From Trichosphaerium sp. ATCC 40318 (taxonomy: Eukaryota; Protista; Tubulinea): a stretch of DNA of 64,000 bases. The position numbers were made by a program, and so were the translations under genes. Shown here piece by piece: positions 730 through 46,917 of this stretch (the stretch's first letter is position 1; every line of letters begins with the position of its first letter). The notes beneath the pieces were generated by a model that saw only the letters and a list, made by a program, of their open reading frames with translations, ran no database searches and was not told where the DNA came from. The stretch is from the NCBI GenBank assembly GCA_038496445.1, contig JALMLS010000288.1:1-64000 (forward strand), written 5' to 3'.

Positions 730-915
730 CTTAGATGCCGTTGAAGATCCTGTTTTTTGCAATGTGTGACTTAACTTCGTGCGTTTTGATTGTTTAAGCT
801 GGTTTATTGTGGCAAGTACATGCTGTCATGATCACAGAATCGACGCACCTGTCTTTGTTGGCTTGTGACACGCCGCACGTCAGTTTCTGTTATTTTAGCG
901 TCAGTAACGCATAAA

Positions 916-3731
916 ATGCGTACAATGCTTAACGCAGGTACGAGCGAACGGTTTATTTTCTCTGTAATTACAATTACAGAGAAAGCGCGCTATTCTGTAG
1001 CAGACAGTGCAAATACTGTTGGATACACACTCCAAGTGCGAACGCTAGACGATTGGTATCGCGTAAAAGGTTGTGAAGTGGACAGTGCTGCTCGACCTGT
1101 TATTGAAGAGTACGCTAATGAGAGTGTAGACTAATGCTTACGCGTGGTGTAGGCATAATGGATCTATCAGTGACTACTTAGTAGCGGCTTATCCTCGTTA
1201 TAAATGGGATCGCATGCAATTCACGTGCGCAAGTTAAGTCTTTGTACTGCACGCTAAATTTGATGGTAGGCACGTACCAAATGCTTACACAAAGCATTGT
1301 TCTCGATTGGCTGTCATGGACACATTCGCACAAGACAATGACCTTAAAACTTTGGATTCGTGGTATGACCTTGATGTCAGTACTATCCGAAGAGCGAAGG
1401 GTTTATCCAGTTTGCTGGCAGGGTATCCATTCATGTTTTCTATTTGCACGCCTAATAATTGTTTGACAATAGGTATTACGACAACAGCTTAGAAAAGGCG
1501 CTGTATACATTATATCCTGAGTATGGATGGCTTGATACCAAATTTTTGTGCGCGTTCAAATTGTCTTGGTAATCCTCCGTATTAACGTTATATATGCAGT
1601 CACGCTAAGGGCTATTGGTCTCACATATCAAATCAAAGAGATAAACTCGAGCAGATATCAAGACGCAAGCGCTTCATGACTTTTGATGGCTGGTACAGCA
1701 TGGATTGGCAGTCAGCGTGCTACCTCGGTGCAGGCTCAATGTTGCAGAGGTATGTATATATAACTAGTCACTGGTCGTTTCCTGTAGTAACGTGTATGCA
1801 AGATATAACTCATCAATCGCCTCAGCCTTAGAGGCTATCTTTCCAGAGCATCCATGGGCACGCCAGGCTTTCAGGTGCGTGATGACTGGTAACAAGATGG
1901 GATGCTAACTAGGTTGTTATTAGTACAGTTCCAAGAGGTCATTGGGATAGTATTCAATCGCATAGAGATACCTTCAACAGACTGGCTGAAACATTGGATA
2001 TATATACAATGGACATGTGGCTCAGTGTAGACAAGAAGCAAGTGAGTACGCATGGAGGTGGTAATGTACTTGCAAAGTGCGTTAATTACTGTTTGCTTCA
2101 TCTTAAAACTTGATTAAAGGTACAACCATGACCTCAAAGCTGCTCTTGATGCTATTTATCCTTCTTTTTTGTGGTGTGAGACCGAGCTGCAGTGCGTATT
2201 ACCCATTATTTGATTGACTAGTAATTTAACTTACACGTCCAGGCAAGCGCAATTGAGTCACATCTCCGCCTATCACGGTCTCTGGATAGCTAAGGTGGGC
2301 GAGTATTTGGGCGTTAAGACCTTGGAGGAGTGGTATGAAGTAACCTTGGAAGACAAGGTACCCAATGGCGTACTTAACAACGTGGTGTCGAGGTACGATC
2401 CACCAGCTGTAGAAACGTGATTAACAGCTGTGCTGAGGTATTCAAATTCAATGTACAGTATGCTAAAAGCATTGTATCCCATGTACGACTGGCAAATGTA
2501 CAAATTTAGGTACTCAACAGAATTGGTAAGATCCCATTCTTATACCGTTGAGGCCATTGTCGACCAGGCGTCGTAGAGTGACGATAAAGTACTTTGACCA
2601 GGTTGACAATCAGCGTCAAAAGTTAGAGAGTGTTGCGCAAGCCTTAAAAGTCAAAACGGTGGATGCATGGCGTTTGATCTCCAAGCAACAGTTTGTACAG
2701 CATGCAAAAGCAGTCTTGAAGAGGTACAGGGGATCAATCAGCCGTACCTTGGACGCCATTTACCCTTTGACAGCCGCCAGTCATTGCGAACTCAAGTACA
2801 ACTTCTATATTGACCTAAGCTATCACTGACTTGTTGTAGGACTCGTAAAGAGCAAAGAATTAGTGGTTACTGGAAAGGTAGTGTGATATATTCACTCATT
2901 TTATTTCGGTAGCTTACTCGCGTAGATACTAAAAACGTTACTAAGTTTTTGAAGAAACTAGAACGCAAACTCAGCATTTCTAACCCGACAGCATGGTACT
3001 TAGAAAGTTGATACGTTAATAACGCATACATGGTAGGTATAGAGTATCTCTAGGCCAACTATTAGCACATGGAGGCGGTGGACTTGCACACCATTTCCCG
3101 TCAGTGCTGGCACAACTACATCCGCATGTAGATTGGCATTGGAACTCTTTCTCATTAAGCGATAAGCGCTCAGTTCAAAGGTACCTATTTTACACATGCA
3201 AGCTGTTTAGTCTTTTTTTGCTATGTGCTATGACAAATACTAATTTTGTGACCAGGAATCTGGTTGAGTACGTTCGTGCAATTTTTCCAAATTTGGTGGT
3301 GGAAGAGGATCATTCTATAGGCACTCTAGATAGCAACGGTGCGCCCATAGTAGTTGATGTGTTTGTGCCTGCACATAATCTGGGTATCGAGTATCAAGGC
3401 ACGTTTATACACCAAAATAGTAGTCACGTGAAGCTAATTGATCATGCGTACTGTAGGTGAACATCATTACATGGATGTCCTCAAGAACGCACATCCAGTC
3501 TCCGTGTACGCTTCAAGGGATGTGGAAAAGGCGGAACAATGTCAATCGCTTGGTGTTACACTCGTAAACTTACCTTATTGGCGTCTGGACGGTATACAGT
3601 CTGTAGTTGAGGTCATAAGGGCCCAAGCTCCACAGACTGTGGCTCATTGGCCAGGTAGCTCATTTGGCTGCCGGTTGCCACCTACAGAGCAGCACAATTC
3701 AGGTACGCCATCATGTAGTGGGGGCGGGTAG
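916..3731 (+). CDS. Protein with 7 tandem ~65-70 aa W/Y repeats and a C-terminal PD-(D/E)XK (Vsr/DUF559/RAP-like) domain; about 16 introns
   Basis: Spliced repeats have cores DDWY, DSWY, DGWY, DMWL, EEWY, DAWR, TAWY, followed by variants of Y-N-x-S...AL..IYP...W. The C-terminus reads VDVFVPAHNLGIEYQGEHHY...RDVEKAEQCQSLGVTLVNLPYW. The start codon is uncertain. Confidence 0.85.
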
Positions 3732-3963
3732 ATGAACCAGTAACATGATTGACACGTGATAGGATATTCAACTGCCTTCGCACGACAACAAATGCAAGTT
3801 GCAGCACTTAGATTTGGCGTTGAAACTGTACAATAGTAAAATATACAAACATAACATAAATACATAAGAAAATTTTTTCAAATCGTTTATTTTTGACACT
3901 TTGAAATCTATTTTGACGTTCGTTTACCACAACAATACGCTAAACGAATGATAAGCAAGAAGC

Positions 3964-6595
3964 ATGGCCTCTCAATCTGAAAGTAGTAAAGGCACCAAGT
4001 TTATAAAGGAATGCCTTGAGAAAGATCTATTGAGGATATTGCTTCAGCATCTTGAAGCAAAGGGATACAATGAAACCATGCATAGGTGTGTTGATGCGTT
4101 TAGTGGAAATGTGTAATTTAACATGCGCCTTTTTCAGCTTAGAGGCTGAAAGCAAGTATTATTTCGATAAAGAATACTTTGCAGGGCTATTTGTAGATGG
4201 ATCATGGGATTTATTGTCCCAATACATGAATAAGTTCTTTACCGGCCCCTCAATGGCCCGAAACGCGATATAATGTATGACATTTGTCGTCACAAGTTTT
4301 TAGATGCTTTAGACAAGTGCGCATTACATTTTGTTGAAATGTGACTAAACCAACGTAGAGGAGATAAACTCACGGCAAAGGTCGTATTAAAACGCGAATT
4401 GGCGGTTTTTTTAAATGCAACACCGCCATGTGACACATCAACGCCTTCGTATATCGCATACCTCGATATGGCGTCGCTCTTGCATATGGATAACTTCAGG
4501 TTTGTACTCAATGTGTTGTGGGCGCGATTTCACATTTTTTTTCAATCAGGGAGCATCCTCACTTGGTATGGCGTGGTAATGCTAAACAAATGAGAGAACA
4601 CAGCGTCAATAAGGTAGGTGTTACTCATATTGTGTTTTAAGTGGTATTTATCTATTAAACAGATTGTGTCGCACATACAGGAGCATTTACCGCTTACTGT
4701 TACACCAGAACTGCCAAAGATACCCGAAAAGGAGAGATTGCGATCGCTTATAAATCAAAGGCATGTGCAAATACTGTGAGACACGCAACACGTGACACAG
4801 TTGTTTTTTGAGATGACTGATTGAAATATTTAGTTTTAATTATCAAACACACAAGGTCGGCACCCCTGGCGGAGCTAGGCCCACTATTCACACGCTTCTT
4901 GTCGATTTTGGCAAGGATGATGAGAGGAATCCCTACGGACACTATGGGTTATTGTCTAAGAAGAAACGTAGCCGCGAAGTATCGTCTTCTAGTAGCCAAC
5001 CTGCGCCAAAGAGATCGAAGCACAACTTTGCAAAAATTAAACCGATAACAGTATGTCATGCTACCTGCACTTCATTCTGTAACCATTCGATAGGCACACG
5101 ATAAGATGTTGGAGAGTGGGAAAGTGCATATACGTAACAACCTATTACAATTTCCACGTGCAACCGAATCGTGCATATCATTTCACACAAAGAAATTCAA
5201 TTACGTATTGAGTGCGTATTATCCTACATGTATCATACGCATAACACTCGATGCAATGTAGTGAACCATGCCACCCAGAAATTAGGATTGTTTGACACAT
5301 CAACAGTTGAGTTGCGCCTTGTTATGGAAATTGACACAGAATGCACTTCAGTTGGCAAGTTGGCATGGGATCCTACTGGCACATACTTTGGTTCGTTCTC
5401 TTTATTTTGAAGCTACAGTGTACCGTACAGTAGTACTTATTATTGTATGTTGTGTATAGTTGCAGCAGACATTGATCAATGGGAGTTGTTCAAAGTTGAC
5501 TGGACAGCAGGAACAGCAAAGTCAGTAGCAGTGACAAAGGGTTCAGGATTAACAGATATCATTTTCGCGACTTTACCTATAGGTCACCGCGTCTCGGTAC
5601 CAGAAAAAATGTTGTGCCTCCTCTACAATCAAGACAATACTATAGAGGTAGCTACATATTCATAAAATCCATAACTATAAGGTCTTTGGTTGACACATGC
5701 TTGATATAGATGTACGATGTTGAAAACAAGAAACGCGTTTGTAGGTTTGAAGGGCACAAGGTACGCGACCCACGGAGCACACACTACACCAGCGCCACTG
5801 TGCACCTTTAAATAGTAATTTAATGTGTTTTAGGCCAGTAGCCTCTATGGATACCATATTTCGTCAAGGAGGCCAAGTACCATTCCTTGTTTCAGTCGGT
5901 ACGCATATTGCACATTGACATTGGTTTAGTAAGGATGATGAGGCTAACTAATCTTTGTTTGCAACAGATGTATCAGAGAAAATGAACATATACCCCTTTG
6001 AGCTATTAGGTGATAGTAACGTAATAACTATTAAACCAGTGGCAAGTATGGACAATCCCTATCAAACGTGCGCTCTGCTTTTAATAAATAATGTGTACCT
6101 CCTACTAACTCATTATTTCTACAGCATTAGGACTGTGTGTTGCCCTGACAGCGAGACACTGATTACAATCAGCTCATCAGACTCATCTTTCATACAATGG
6201 AGTACAGTAAGTGTTAAACACAAGGTAATTTGTGAGTTGTGACTCATCACTTTTTACAGGACGGGCAAGGCATCGTCAAGAATTTTACACCATATAAATG
6301 CACAACGCACACCAGGCTTATGTCTGTGCGCGATCTACTGGCTGTAAATCACGAAAAGTACCTAAGCGTTTGGCAGCGCACAAATGAAAATGTAAGTTTA
6401 GTTGTCAGTAGGCTGTGGCTCACTTTTTTTTTGTAGTCAGTGGGCACTGTGAAATTTAAAGGACCAGTGAGGTCTTTTGCTATTAGCGCTGATGGCAAAT
6501 GTATTGCGGCAGCTGTAATAAGAAATGGTCAAGTGACACTTTCATTGGTCCACAACATTTTCGACAGTTGGGGTGTAAATGTAGATGTTGTTTGA
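3964..6595 (+). CDS. TOPLESS-like LisH-CTLH-CRA protein with a probable WD40-like C-terminus; one apparent frameshift
   Basis: LLRILLQHLEAKGYNETMHSLEAESKYYFDKEYF...GSWD, IMYDICRHKFLDALDK and RLRSLINQSFNYQ match TPL N-terminal motifs. LAWDPTGTYF and FAISADGKCIA are WD40-like. Confidence 0.7.
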
Positions 6596-6663: not shown

Positions 6664-9008
6664 TTACAGTTTGGCCAATTCCTTTAGCCTTGTTAAATGT
6701 TGTACATCTTGCAGTGGCACGCCCAACGTTTGAATGTGTTTAACATACGCTGTGACATCTAGTTTGAACTGTAGCGTCATAAAAGCGATATCGCTTTCAA
6801 GTGACGTCTGCTGTAACGATGTCTTGCGTGCCAGCCTCGTTTTCTCGCCAGCAATCTTCTCGACAACGGACGTTCCCAAGATGGCGTAGCTATCACCTGG
6901 TTAAAAAACACTCCAAGAAGAGGTACAGCTTACCTGTGCGTCAGCTCAGAAAGTAGTGGAATGTGAAAGTAATTGGTGCAGTATGTGTTGTCTGGAAGTA
7001 CAGGAGCAGCCAACAACCTCGTCCACCTGTGTATAGGTTCAAACGCAGCGTTGACATACGCCATGCATTTTACAGGCTTTGCCTTTCCTTGCTAAGAAAT
7101 GTAGGTTAGACCAAAGCTCTTTGGTGGGTTAGTAAGTACCATACGGTAGTGCATGACAGTCATTTTAACCTTTGTCAAGCTCTTTTGTGCTGTTTTCAAA
7201 ACTCTTTGTTTGGTGCGCTCCAGCAACCGTTTAATGGCTTCCACCGGTGCACTAACTCCAGCCACTACCTTGCGCGCGCCGTGTTCCATCTGCGGGTCGA
7301 TGTTTGCCAGCAGTTTCCCTACTTTATCGGCGTATGTAGTGGATTGGTGCTTGTATAGTGCCGACAGATCTGCGATCAAGTTATCTGCTGGTGCGCCCGT
7401 CTCCTCCGCACAACACCATGTGCTGTACCTGCATTAAAATATAAGCAATAGGCATGGCTGACGCACAGTCGGGCTTACCGTTTAATGACTTGGATAGCTA
7501 GTTTTAAAAAATCGTGTGCAAGTGGTCGAAGAAATAATTTTGGAGACCAAATCTCGTCCAGAAGTGTCACTGTTTGAACGGAGGATGCCAGTTTGAAGTT
7601 GAACAAGTTCTCAGTGGCACGTTTTGGTGCAACAGTTTCAGTGAGATGTGCAAGACACTTGTCGACCAACTCTTTCTGCACCATCGTGAAGTACACGCGC
7701 AATGGCATCGTCCAACGCTTCATCAAGTTGGTGTAGTGTCCACTTTGTCTGAAAGCCAGCAAGTACTTGTGTTGTTGAGGCAACCGCGCTTCTAACCCAG
7801 AACATAACATCATACACGCAGAGTAATTGGCGTGTATGGCGGCAGGTACTGTTGTTGGAAAAACAATACGGCTAATCGACTGTTCTTGCAGCGCCTCGAC
7901 TACAGGCTGGAAAACGCCTAGTGTAACTATTGTTGCCACCAGGCGATTGTGTGATGCCTCTGCTGCGACTGCCAGGAGGCGGCCGAGTTGTTGGTCCACG
8001 TGTTTGAGTAACTGATCCACAAATTGGTCGACAGCACGCGTTCCTCGCAGTTCCTTCGATCTCTTTTGCCACAAACAATTTAATGATAGATTTTTTACAA
8101 AAGGACAAGTGTTCGCACGCACCTCTTTAAGAAAGGAGTCGATGTAGTGGTGTTGTATGACATGCACGAGCGGGTGTGGATCCGTTGATTGTGCGTGATT
8201 GCCATGCGCAAGCATGTACACGGACAGCGCATCCCGTAAGAGTACCTTTTGACCATCGCCATGATCCACCTGGCCTTCCAAAAAAACTGGCGCCATTCTC
8301 TTTAAAATTCGCGATCGCACGACTTGTAATCGCTACGTGACACGTTAATAATGTACAAGCGTTTGACGTGCGCAGAGACGTTTGCTAACCTTGTTCATCA
8401 AAATCACGAATGCTTCGCTACCCTCCCACTCTTTTACAGATTCTAGCAGGTTCCTCACAGTGACGAGCAAGTTGGCTGCGCCTAGCAGCGTGTCACATTC
8501 TTCTGTTGCGTCTGTAGCACTTTGCTTGAGTAAAAGTGCTTCAAGCTGTTCTGTAGCATTGCATATTGCTTTGTAACGCGTCAAAATATCGTTAGAGCGA
8601 CTACAGCGCTCTGCCACCGCTAGCTTATCAGATAGATCATTCCAGCACTCAGTAACGCCGTCTTCAACTATGTTCGCCTCCTGTTGTAGCACTAGGAGCT
8701 TTGGGCGAATGTGGTGAATTTTTTCAATGATTTTGTCTCGTTCTGCGTGTAAATCTTTAAATAAGTGTAAATTGTCGTGTATGGCAACTGCCAAGTCGCT
8801 CGAAATCTTTTTCAGCTGTGTGTCGAGATACGACCGCACATAGTCAATAGAGCCTACCCTACTCTGTCCTTCTACAACCTTGTACGAGTAATCAATGCTT
8901 TGGTTTGTTTTTGACACGTACAATATTCAAAACGGGCTGGTCGCCTTGTAGTTGTTGGTCTATCCAAAACTCAAATGATTTAAGTGCCGGTGTCGCAATT
9001 GCTGTCAT
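6664..9008 (-). CDS. COG2: Conserved oligomeric Golgi complex subunit 2-like
   Basis: N-terminal coiled coil (VRSYLDTQLKKISSDLAVAIHDNLHLF), central MKRWTMPLRVYF and IWSPKLFLRPLAHDFLKLAIQVIKR, and C-terminal QFKLDVTAYVKHIQTLGV are typical of COG2. Confidence 0.75.
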
Positions 9009-24466: not shown

Positions 24467-26352
24467 CTATGTTACATGCAACATTGTGCAATTGTTTGAG
24501 GCCGTCATCATACCTTGTTGCCTTCCTTTAGCTTCTGCGAGGTAGTGTGGTGTGTTTACAGCCTGATTGTTGGTACTTCGGTTAATAATATTGACGAGGG
24601 TAGTTGCTGTGCCATCAAACCTAAACAAGTGTCAAAAAAAACAACATAAAAACAAGACGTACCAATACGGAACTGTGATCAATGTTATACCGAACTGTTT
24701 ACAAAGTGCAAACTTTTCCTCATCACGGAGCTTATGTGCAGCACTGGGGGACGCATGTGGTAACACATCATGGTAATGTTGCTCGCCTACAGATGTTATC
24801 CTAATGCCTGGTGGTTCCGTTCCACTTTACCTTGGTATTCTATGGCAATGTTGTGTTCTGGGACATACATGTCTATCACAACAGGTGCCCCGTTGGAGTC
24901 TCGTATCCCAACAGTATACTCCTCATATACTGTTGCACCTTTAAAGACTTCATTAACCAGCGTTGACAATAGCCTTGAGTATGTTTAATATAGTCTAAGA
25001 TTGGGCATTTGGTACCTCTGCGCTGATCTCTTAAACAGAGAATTGAAATTAGGGAGCTTCCACGCCACATTAGGATACAGAACGGACAAAGAAGACAGAA
25101 AATATCGAATAAAACCAGGGCCAGTAGTATCAGATAGTTGTTTCTGCGATATACGGTACCTAGACCCAAAAATTAGTATTAACATTTGATGTGAGTGGTT
25201 CTTGCCATGATGTCGGCTCAGTTATATTGAACTGGATCTCTAGACGTTTCAAGTATGTCAAGATATTCTCTTTGTTATCCCAAAAATGTTGTGGCGTTAA
25301 GGCACCTTGGCGGCTTGGACAAAGTGTAAGTGTTTCACAAACACATTTGGGAAATGACTTAGTGCGAGAAATACGTACTCTACTTTAAACATATGTGGTG
25401 CCCATGATTGTTCTGGATATATAGCACGCAACGCATTCAATAAAGAGTGGCCATACCTACTACCTTGTCATTGACAATCGCACATAATGGGTGCTATGTA
25501 CCTGTGCGTTATTCCTCCACTGAGGTCACATATCGTCTTAGTGGAGTGTTTGGCCCAATCCGACATGAGCTTTATATCAAGGTCAGTACCTATTTCGTCG
25601 AACTTTTCGCGTTGATTAGTGATAGAACTCCAAAAGCCATGAGGTGCATTTCTAAGCATATAGTAAGCTTACTGACAAGCCTTTATTACCTACTTGAAGT
25701 GCCACGGTCGCCAATTGTAGCGTGGAAATATAGTCATGAGTGCAGAAGATATTGAGCCTTTGTACCTTTTGTCCGAATATGTTAGTGGGACTCTACGCTC
25801 TAGTTTTTTTACGCACTGATTCATCAACACACTGCCCCCTCCTTTCGCATGTGCGTCCTCCCAAGTGATATCGTACCAATCATCCAACGTAGCAACTGAC
25901 AGAGATTCTCCTATTTTTTGAAATCTGGTGTGTTGGTGTTCCAGTAGATGCCAGTGTCCCATAGGAGCCCTTTCACGTCTGTCAGTTACAGCTACAACAC
26001 GTGTCTTACGCTTACATAAACCTATTTTCTACCCAGTCATAGCCGGGATAGGCTGCTTGAAGTAGAAGTACCAGACTGTTTTTGAACCTACAGATGATCC
26101 AAGTATTATTCATTGAGCACGTGCTTTGGTACTTACTGGCGCAAGATGATGCTCCCTCCTGCCTCTTCTATGTCTACTTGCTTCACCGCATACCAATCAG
26201 TGAGCGTGCGCACGTTTAGCGTGTGTGCGATGGTGGCTATGCGCTTCTGTTGCCATGAAAGCAACCTTCAACTGTCAGCGCTGTATGAGGTTCTAGTCGC
26301 ACCTTGCTTCGCTTTTAACGCGTGATGCTGCGTATTGGGCTGCTTTGTTCAT
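24467..26352 (-). CDS. Paralog of 916-3731: 4 W/Y repeats plus a PD-(D/E)XK-like domain
   Basis: Repeat cores TDWY, DDWY, SDWA, TSWY. C-terminus KRSAQR...DSNGAPVVIDMYVPEHNIAIEYQGEQHY...RDEEKFALCKQFGITLITVPYW. Shares intron positions with the paralog. The start is uncertain. Confidence 0.85.
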
Positions 26353-45435: not shown

Positions 45436-46530
45436 CTATTGCTTTTTTTTAAGTGCCAAAACCCAATCACAGCGTGGTTTAACAGTGAACCCATCATCAA
45501 CAATATCAACTGCGAAACTACCTGCAAACATTAAAGTATCGTACTTTACACCATTATCATCTACTACAACAGGTACTGTACAATAACCAGGCGATATTTT
45601 TGCCATGTCAATAACAGGCCAGTTAGACTTTATAGTATTGCTAAACGTCTGTGCAGTGCGGTTATCTCCTCTCCATACACCGTCACCGTCAAAGGCACAG
45701 AATGCGGTAATCCATCCACTTAGGTATGAAGGACCACTACCACCGGCGTGGTGGTTGCATATCTTTGCCCAGAATTTGAGATTTGGTTTTCCAGAAGAAG
45801 CCGAGACAAGCTCATCCAAAATAGGTGTTAGATACGCGTGCCACTTGTTCATCATTTTCTTGCCGGAGACTTCGAATTCGAGAAGTTTATCAACCTTTTC
45901 ACGTAGCTTGATATAGTCCTCAGGTTTACCGAGAAGAGTGACGTTTGGAATGCCGCACCTGAGGCAGAATTCATACGAAAAGTATTTTTTCATGCTCGCC
46001 ATTAGGAGCACTGATGATACGACCTTATCTGTTGTTGTCGTCGTTGTAAAGTCTTGAATGACCCAAGAGCGTATGTTATCGTCTTTCAGATTCTTTTGCA
46101 TTTCGCCAGTCATTCGTAGAGCTAAGTCTGCGTAATCTGCTGTTCTGAGTGTTCCACCAGCGACAACAACGAGTTCCTTCTTTCCTGAATGTGATACAAA
46201 CTTGTTTCGGAGCTTTTCGGCGTTGTTGTTAACGTAGAGGCTGAATTGGGTTAGGATAGCCGTCCAAAAGTCGTCTGGGCGTAAAATTATATTGTGGTGA
46301 TAACAATAGGCAGTGACAATGGAATTGACGAAGCCGTTTGTTTGCATAGCCCTTGCAGAAGGGTTTTTTGCGTATTCCGAGCATTGTAATACTTCCTTGA
46401 GCGGTTTATTGTCAGAGTTACCTTGTAAGTACTCTTTAAGGTCACAAACAACATTTCGAAGACCAGGTTTGGTTGAATTTAATTGTACTTCCGTAGGTTT
46501 CTGCTTTGAAGGCTGAAACGTGGCATACAT
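45436..46530 (-). CDS. DUF4419 family protein, intronless body
   Basis: NGFV..AY..HH.IILRPDDFW..I..QFS.YVN.NAE.LR..FV.H.GKKEL, FTTTT..D, CGIPNVTLLG..EDY, SGPSYLSGWITAFC. The start may lie further upstream. Confidence 0.88.
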   Translation of the reverse strand: MYATFQPSKQKPTEVQLNSTKPGLRNVVCDLKEYLQGNSDNKPLKEVLQCSEYAKNPSARAMQTNGFVNSIVTAYCYHHNIILRPDDFWTAILTQFSLYVNNNAEKLRNKFVSHSGKKELVVVAGGTLRTADYADLALRMTGEMQKNLKDDNIRSWVIQDFTTTTTTDKVVSSVLLMASMKKYFSYEFCLRCGIPNVTLLGKPEDYIKLREKVDKLLEFEVSGKKMMNKWHAYLTPILDELVSASSGKPNLKFWAKICNHHAGGSGPSYLSGWITAFCAFDGDGVWRGDNRTAQTFSNTIKSNWPVIDMAKISPGYCTVPVVVDDNGVKYDTLMFAGSFAVDIVDDGFTVKPRCDWVLALKKKQ

Positions 46531-46917
46531 AGTTGAATAATTGCTTTTTGCCAAATAAAACGCGTTTTGTTTTCAACGAAATTCCTACCGAACAAAAGTT
46601 TGCGTAAGAATTTGTATCTTGTGTAACAGCACCCATCTCAAAATGTTGTTACAATTTTTGTGCAATGATTGTGTCACACAAATACTAGAACTAAAAAATT
46701 GTAATCAGACGCACCATGGTGCAAGTAAAGTGAGCTTGTTGTATTTTGTGTACTAGTATAATTTTTTATTACTTTACAACCTGTATGTACCGCTAAATTG
46801 ATGGACCTCTTTTGTATTATAAATAATACAATTGCCCAATTTAAATGATAATCTTCTCAATAGCGGTAACACAAAAAAAAAAGAGAAGAAAAACTGCTTC
46901 TTTTGAGATTATTCCGA

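Follow-up and report, generated by a model that had tools for sequence, protein, structure and literature searches.

An intron-rich Trichosphaerium gene for a protein with tandem ~75-residue units and a predicted Vsr-type nuclease domain

We analyzed a 64,000-nt stretch of DNA from Trichosphaerium sp. ATCC 40318 (Tubulinea), hereafter termed the window, which comprises positions 1 to 64,000 of the forward strand of contig JALMLS010000288.1 (assembly GCA_038496445.1). Near its start lies a gene whose spliced product carries a tandem array of ~75-residue units, followed by a predicted C-terminal nuclease domain of the PD-(D/E)XK type. The region contains many short in-frame pieces and no long open reading frame. 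Its features are given below, with units numbered U0 to U6 and identified by a hidden Markov model (HMM) that was built from 84 units of other organisms' proteins and included no window sequence. For U1 to U6, the E-values are independent E-values (i-E).

916-3836, forward strand: entire transcribed coding region, with 18 exons separated by 17 short introns, stop codon at 3834-3836
980-1229, forward strand: unit U0 (exons 980-1109 and 1153-1229), read from the ATG at 916, HMM E 2.5e-14
1271-1547, forward strand: unit U1 (exons 1271-1422 and 1473-1547), i-E 1.9e-15
1600-1874, forward strand: unit U2 (exons 1600-1749 and 1803-1874), i-E 1.9e-18
1924-2191, forward strand: unit U3 (exons 1924-2076 and 2120-2191), i-E 9.3e-22
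2243-2509, forward strand: unit U4 (exons 2243-2392 and 2438-2509), i-E 8.8e-16
2553-2795, forward strand: unit U5, the sole single-exon unit, strongly basic (net charge +11), i-E 6.2e-15
2840-3180, forward strand: unit U6 (exons 2840-2877, 2926-2995 and 3037-3180), basic (net charge +9), i-E 2.4e-21
3256-3702, forward strand: predicted Vsr/EDxHD-type PD-(D/E)XK nuclease domain (exons 3256-3398 and 3457-3702), recognized by a nuclease HMM and the family motif
3763-3836, forward strand: last exon, which encodes a 24-residue C-terminal tail with the stop codon and whose positions 3764-3774 match the free end of the transcript contig

Splicing of this gene was observed in a transcript contig from a public sequencing run (X1). 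The contig was 2035 nt long with a depth of 10.7, and covered 902-3703 plus 11 nt past the last intron. Of the 17 introns, 16 were skipped; the free end of the contig at 3703 fits 3764-3774, which accounts for the last one. The skipped stretches were 41-75 nt long, and after the cut points were shifted, 15 introns had GT-AG borders, one had GC-AG borders (3399-3456) and one junction was irregular (1229/1272). When joined from 1271 on, the exons formed a 617-codon open frame ending at 3834-3836. Exons of the repeat region were paired, with lengths of about 150 and 72 nt, and all introns there were in phase 2, while the GC-AG intron lies inside the nuclease domain and splits the Gly codon of its EYQG motif. 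The initial annotation of this locus had proposed a spliced gene, in agreement with the transcript contig, and had placed its end at 3731, which is the stop of the unspliced frame; removal of the last intron (3703-3762) moves the stop to 3834-3836.

The contig and the window differed at 13 listed positions, all of which were transitions (A>G, 4; G>A, 5; T>C, 3; C>T, 1). These differences clustered in three exons (1600-2795), and the other exons were identical to the window, suggesting that the contig represents an allele or a near copy or paralogue of the window gene. The spliced form exists as RNA, though in such an allele or near copy, and the locus is a real, expressed, intron-rich nuclear gene.

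The 5' end requires a separate account. Read from the ATG at 916, the first three exons encode one extra unit (U0). Between exons 3 and 4 there is a single canonical intron (GT1233..AG1269, 37 nt), and its removal shifts the frame. The junction found in the contig, where 1230-1271 was skipped and one extra G was present, shifts it as well. The frame is kept only by an exact removal of 42 nt at this junction. Since the junction (window positions 1222-1280) lies within a short inverted repeat (CACGTGC...GCACGT), its irregularity may be an artefact of assembly. Because neither canonical nor observed splicing joins U0 in frame, we count six secure units and one of uncertain standing. The tandem array described in the initial annotation is therefore present, with six rather than seven units in the main frame (i-E 1.9e-15 to 9.3e-22) and with unit lengths of about 74-84 residues rather than ~65-70.

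The seven window units could be aligned to each other, with mutual identities of only about 13-30%. The consensus of the family unit was W..NQR.F...L...L.I....DWY.V...GG..LL..Y.gS...AL...YPe..W..w.F, and the consensus previously drawn from the window alone agreed with it. Conserved positions were mostly aromatic or structural: a Trp, the Asn-Gln-Arg that starts a long helix, DWY, a GG loop, Y-x-x-S, YP, a second Trp and a Phe. The exposed positions of the first helix were variable, and many positions were rich in Lys and Arg. Most homologous units were basic, with a median isoelectric point of 9.4 and values above 8 in 79% of units. The initial annotation had likened the array to TALENs, with variable residues that could set specificity. 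Given the low identity among units and the lack of a visible specificity code, TALEN-likeness is an analogy rather than a finding.

The unit did not match the known repeat families. No significant Pfam match was obtained for the window exons (scanned singly, each of them short and split), for 71 separate units or for whole homologues, and a profile search of PDB sequences with the unit found none. An AlphaFold2 model of U5, computed from a 71-row alignment, was compact and helical, with a predicted local distance difference test score (pLDDT) of 80.5 and helices at residues 9-13, 17-31, 36-39, 44-57, 62-69 and 72-75; the units generally comprised 74-84 residues with five or six helices each. 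No solved fold matched this model, the best VIA Z among 48,161 chains being 4.5 and the best Foldseek E being 6. These results uphold the view that the unit is unlike PPR, OPR, TALE, PUF and ankyrin repeats.

Among predicted structures, the U5 model superposed on an Atlas cluster of which 98% carried Pfam DUF4046 (PF13255), with a template modelling (TM) score of 0.68 over 72 residues, and more weakly (TM about 0.5) on clusters of HNH_repeat, or 'homing endonuclease associated repeat' (PF18780). It also superposed on predicted-structure clusters from Nucleocytoviricota and Tubulinea, on AlphaFold entries automatically named 'RAP domain-containing', and on UniProt entries D3B0J8, F0ZK93 and Q54JM7, which we take to be dictyostelid proteins. 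A precomputed DUF4046 match was attached to about a tenth of the relatives and was rated faint in the sole case for which a strength was given. Sequence scans did not reproduce the match to DUF4046, with one of 71 units matching at E 0.1 and none of the six relatives bearing the precomputed label matching at E<=0.1. Kinship of the unit to the helicase-associated (HA) domain was rejected (hhalign probability 0.2%).

The model of the four-unit homologue P0024 showed high confidence within units and dips in pLDDT at the linkers (residues 59-64 and 135-141), with a predicted TM score of 0.55. Together with the folding of U5 on its own, these dips suggest separate domains on a string. The models thus suggest that the units are independently folding small helical domains joined by linkers, and not a solenoid of the TALE or PPR style.

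The C-terminal domain was recognized by a nuclease HMM built without window sequences, which matched its two window exons at 1.2e-9 and 1.5e-14. In an alignment of 36-41 family members, five residues (D, E, H, D and K) were nearly invariant in the pattern D-x10-E-Y-Q-G-x2-H ... D-x2-K, followed by C, G and PYWW. In P0024 numbering these columns are D325, E336, H342, D360 and K363, and all five are occupied in the window protein, where the motif D-x10-EYQG-x2-H ... RD-x-EK ... C ... G-x-TL-x2-LPYW is present as originally described. At the E-x-K position, Gln takes the third place (EYQG). The spacing from Asp to His, counted by hand, is 17 residues, equal to that between D196 and H213 of I-Bth0305I. 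In that enzyme, D196, H213 and D222 are the counterparts of Vsr D51, H69 and D97 (PMC3239194), and the equivalence drawn here rests on spacing and that study rather than on residue-level superposition.

A second member of the family lies further along the window:

about 24659-26252, reverse strand: four units and a nuclease domain, found by HMM matches on the six-frame translation and by reading frames

This paralogue has introns at the same places inside its units as the first gene. It shares about 46-50% identity with the first gene in the nuclease exons, and keeps the catalytic residues in all five columns.

Evidence on the folds came from stand-ins, namely P0024 for the nuclease and the single-exon U5 for the unit. 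The AlphaFold2 model of P0024 had a pLDDT of 83, and its residues 285-396 formed an H-E-E-E-H-E-H arrangement, corresponding to an alpha-beta-beta-beta-alpha-beta-alpha core. This restriction-endonuclease-like core agrees with the Vsr/DUF559 fold named in the initial annotation. Its matches among solved structures were as follows.

I-Bth0305I catalytic domain (3r3p), 97 of 97 residues: Z 9.8
Toxoplasma gondii mitoribosomal protein 9i05_Xr: Z 9.6
NGO0050 (3hrl): Z 9.1
T. gondii mitoribosomal protein 9g6k_Li: Z 8.6
Vsr (1cw0 / 1vsr): Z 8.5 / 8.2
FASTKD4 RAP module (9gek): Z 7.5

By sequence, 22 of the 41 family nuclease domains matched Pfam DUF2726 (E<=1), six matched PvuRts1I_N, four DUF559 and two RAP. 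The relatives P0006 and P0007 scored 29.6 and 28.6 bits for DUF2726, above its gathering cut-off of 24.7, while the best RAP (PF08373) match had an E of 0.022, far under the gathering score. The two window nuclease exons, scanned separately, gave no Pfam match, and a profile search of PDB sequences with the nuclease domain found none. PHROGs named as HNH, homing or intron-encoded nucleases matched family domains with E down to 2e-27. Taken together, sequence and model identify the C-terminal domain as a PD-(D/E)XK nuclease of the Vsr/DUF559/RAP clan in which the residues of the predicted catalytic set are intact. Sequence comparison places it closest to DUF2726 and to phage families of homing endonucleases, and not to RAP. 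The RAP kinship proposed earlier thus holds at the level of clan and fold, and not as the nearest relationship by sequence.

The window's own protein was absent from the protein collections searched. First homologues came from a phmmer search of the whole library with the 81-residue nuclease exon, which gave 16 weak matches. The closest homologue of the spliced window protein was P0024, from a Trichosphaerium transcript (blastp, 32% identity over 412 residues, E 5e-74). Further homologues were found in Pyxidicula and Cavostelium, both Amoebozoa, and on AT-rich, apparently eukaryotic metagenome contigs, where the gene is intronless. A search with a seven-unit array recovered at least 243 relatives at E<=1e-6. 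Among 119 that were examined, 41 had units and a nuclease domain and 78 had units only, with 4-12 units each. Some relatives came from metagenome-assembled bacterial genomes (Chloroflexi, Planctomycetes, Deltaproteobacteria, Desulfobulbus). In some eukaryotic relatives, the nuclease was duplicated or fused to a LigE-like ATP-dependent DNA ligase. The 868-residue relative P0288 carries seven units, the nuclease and two C-terminal Pfam HA domains (E 1e-30).

A profile scan of one genome per bacterial or archaeal species found 122 loci with a nuclease relative, and units were present in 2 of the 80 loci kept; a scan of bacterial genomes with a single protein as query found no relative. Nuclease-based scanning of viral contigs gave at least 282 nuclease relatives, and units were found in none of the 80 viral loci kept. 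Predicted viral structures confirmed the nuclease in phages and giant viruses, and the Atlas clusters nearest to the unit and to P0024 were partly from Nucleocytoviricota. Literature on DUF4046, on the 'homing endonuclease associated repeat' and on Vsr-like helical-repeat proteins of amoebae held no description of the family that we could find. The nuclease and the type of architecture are of known kinds, while the module and its pairing with this nuclease are undescribed yet abundant in public sequence data. The locus does not hold a new system of its own, as had been suggested, given that the same architecture already occurs in public data from Amoebozoa and bacteria.

The bacterial copies were found among conjugation, integrase and helicase-nuclease genes. 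At one locus (L163:5920-13241), a one-strand run comprised an unknown 694-residue protein, a protein with eight units and the nuclease, a UvrD-type helicase and a PDDEXK_1 nuclease. Overlaps of a few bases connect the first three genes, and the run may form an operon that bears on function. Other copies adjoined ArdC, a resolvase and a phage-type replication gene; NikA, a primase, an N6/N4 methyltransferase and an integrase; a type IV secretion system (T4SS) coupling protein and transposases; or an AbiU2-like HEPN gene or a Schlafen/AlbA_2 gene. No PADLOC defence model matched. At a further locus (L165:6191-9842), two neighbouring bacterial genes each encode eight units without a nuclease, forming unit-only arrays in tandem.

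The explanation that we favor, with roughly even confidence, is a DNA-directed modular endonuclease, in which an array of basic helical modules is combined with one nuclease of the Vsr/EDxHD type (DUF2726-like). The sequence affinities favor this explanation, and the DNA-mobility context in bacteria and the ligase fusions, though drawn from few loci, point to DNA rather than RNA as the substrate. We infer the substrate, the mode of binding and cleavage itself. Six, perhaps seven, autonomous and mostly basic modules of ~75 residues would lie along double-stranded DNA, each contacting it through the conserved Asn-Gln-Arg at the start of its long first helix and through nearby variable, often basic positions. 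The extended footprint would place the nuclease domain for Mg2+-dependent strand cleavage. A single nuclease domain would be expected to nick, unless the protein dimerizes as I-Bth0305I does.

Several observations weigh against a DNA-directed endonuclease. The fold was predicted for P0024, which is 32% identical to the window protein, and it matches RNA-associated RAP proteins almost as well as nucleases. The ligand of the unit cannot be read from structure because the unit has no solved structural relative. UniProt automatically names some relatives 'RAP domain-containing', and several complete homologues (P0007, P0009, P0010, P0023 and P0038) have presequence-like, basic N-termini with few acidic residues. 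The bacterial context is known from only a few loci.

Much of this evidence feeds the main rival explanation, which we regard as unlikely though stronger than the other alternatives: an organellar RNA factor of the RAP type, whose array would recognize specific mitochondrial transcripts or pieces of rRNA and whose Vsr-like domain would bind or process RNA ends, a role proposed for FASTK, OPR-RAP and HPR-RAP proteins. A helical array followed by a C-terminal Vsr-like domain is the layout of RAP proteins (PMC8190603), and the matches to the T. gondii mitoribosomal proteins and FASTKD4, the automatic names and the basic N-termini are consistent with it. It has to contend, however, with the scarcity of RAP matches relative to DUF2726 and with modules of 75 residues instead of solenoid hairpin repeats of 34-40. 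Moreover, the same architecture is found in DNA-mobility contexts in bacteria, which lack organelles, and some relatives are fused to DNA ligase. The N-termini themselves, at a crude inspection of the homologues, were divided: presequence-like in some, whereas many homologues begin directly with a unit and have no presequence.

The bacterial and viral surroundings bear on another explanation, which we consider improbable, namely a nuclease of conflicts or selfish elements. The family would then be a diversifying DNA-targeting set directed against invading DNA (giant viruses, plasmids) or would be spread by such elements, with the amoebozoan copies deriving from viral or bacterial mobile genes. 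The neighbouring AbiU2-like HEPN, Schlafen/AlbA_2, ArdC, resolvase, integrase and T4SS genes fit this explanation, as do the frequency of nuclease-domain relatives in phages and giant viruses, the Nucleocytoviricota share of the nearest Atlas clusters and the presence in the window of two diverged paralogues with four and six to seven units. Set against these are the absence of PADLOC matches and of units from the viral loci kept. In addition, the numerous spliceosomal introns of the window genes lie at conserved positions, and the genes are paralogues diverged by about 50%, which indicates that they are old residents and not recent arrivals.

Least probable is a binding-only protein whose catalytically silent nuclease domain would serve in dimerization or in holding nucleic acid and whose copy in the window may be decaying at its 5' end: the Gln of EYQG, the many RAP domains thought not to cleave and the first unit lying out of frame in the canonical and observed splice forms would fit it, but Vsr-type enzymes themselves lack the classical Lys (PMC3239194), and D, E, H, D and K hardly vary among 36-41 divergent sequences and are kept by both paralogues of the window, as would be expected if catalysis were under selection.

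A bolder extension of the DNA-directed endonuclease is a speculation to which we give little credence. The units would form a new class of sequence-reading DNA-binding domain, each using the variable side of its first helix to recognize a few base pairs, and the length and order of the array would set a long target for each paralogue. The expanded amoebozoan repertoire, some members of which carry a ligase, would then be a programmable set of nucleases against giant-virus or organellar DNA.

Other genes were recognized in the window. The next gene downstream (3964-4300, forward strand) encodes a start that, judged by eye from the translation, resembles a LisH/CTLH, TOPLESS-like N-terminus. An exon at 7475-8320 (reverse strand) matches the COG2 C-terminal domain. 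A single-exon gene at 45436-46554 (reverse strand) encodes a DUF4419 protein (Pfam E 4e-104), whose nearest named relatives are scattered among Naegleria, oomycetes and dictyostelids.

Arrays of nucleic-acid-binding modules joined to nucleases underlie several genome-engineering tools, and they also play key roles in homing endonucleases and in the expression of organelle genes (PPR, OPR, RAP). The present family adds a module type that has neither a Pfam model nor a solved structure and occurs in bacteria, amoebae and probably giant viruses. Should the modules prove to read sequence, they would provide a new scaffold for recognition; a role in organelles or in defence would explain the expanded amoebal gene family. 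Even a cautious reading annotates many 'hypothetical proteins' and provides a testable nuclease.

Compared with known systems, the likeness to TALE, PPR and PUF proteins and to TALENs is one of concept, that is, tandem modules each reading part of a target, joined to a nuclease. Their repeats have 33-38 residues and form a superhelix, whereas the window units have about 75 residues and appear to be separate domains, without a match in sequence or fold; they share only about 13-30% identity, and no code is visible in them. DUF4046 (PF13255) and PF18780 resemble the unit by superposition of predicted structures (TM 0.68 and about 0.5), and both Pfam families are themselves uncharacterized. DUF2726 is the nearest Pfam family to the nuclease by sequence; a census of PD-(D/E)XK proteins groups it with Vsr and DUF559 and notes mobile-element surroundings for it (PMC3424549). 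Members of these families are single-domain proteins or have other N-terminal modules (zinc ribbons, DUF723), and none has been described with the unit array.

RAP proteins (FASTKD1-5, OPR-RAP, HPR-RAP and T. gondii mitoribosomal proteins) share the N-terminal helical array and the C-terminal Vsr-like domain, with fold Z of 7.5-9.6. They act on organellar RNA and carry solenoid repeats of 34-40 residues or FAST_1/FAST_2 domains, whereas the window family has apparently autonomous modules of 75 residues, also occurs in bacteria and is barely matched by Pfam RAP. A census of RAP proteins reported none in Amoebozoa (PMC8190603), which indicates that the window family has not been counted as RAP so far.

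I-Bth0305I, an EDxHD homing endonuclease (3R3P), gave the best fold match to the nuclease domain. It has two NUMOD-type helix-turn-helix motifs and is encoded in a phage group I intron, whereas the window gene is nuclear and free-standing, contains 17 spliceosomal introns and encodes an array of 75-residue units, with no homing site or mobile intron; Pfam searches with the exons, units and whole homologues gave no NUMOD match in the N-terminal modules. What the two proteins have in common is a C-terminal nuclease with the same Asp...His...Asp set and the same 17-residue spacing from Asp to His, preceded in I-Bth0305I by small helical DNA-binding modules (PMC3239194) and in the window protein by small, predicted helical units.

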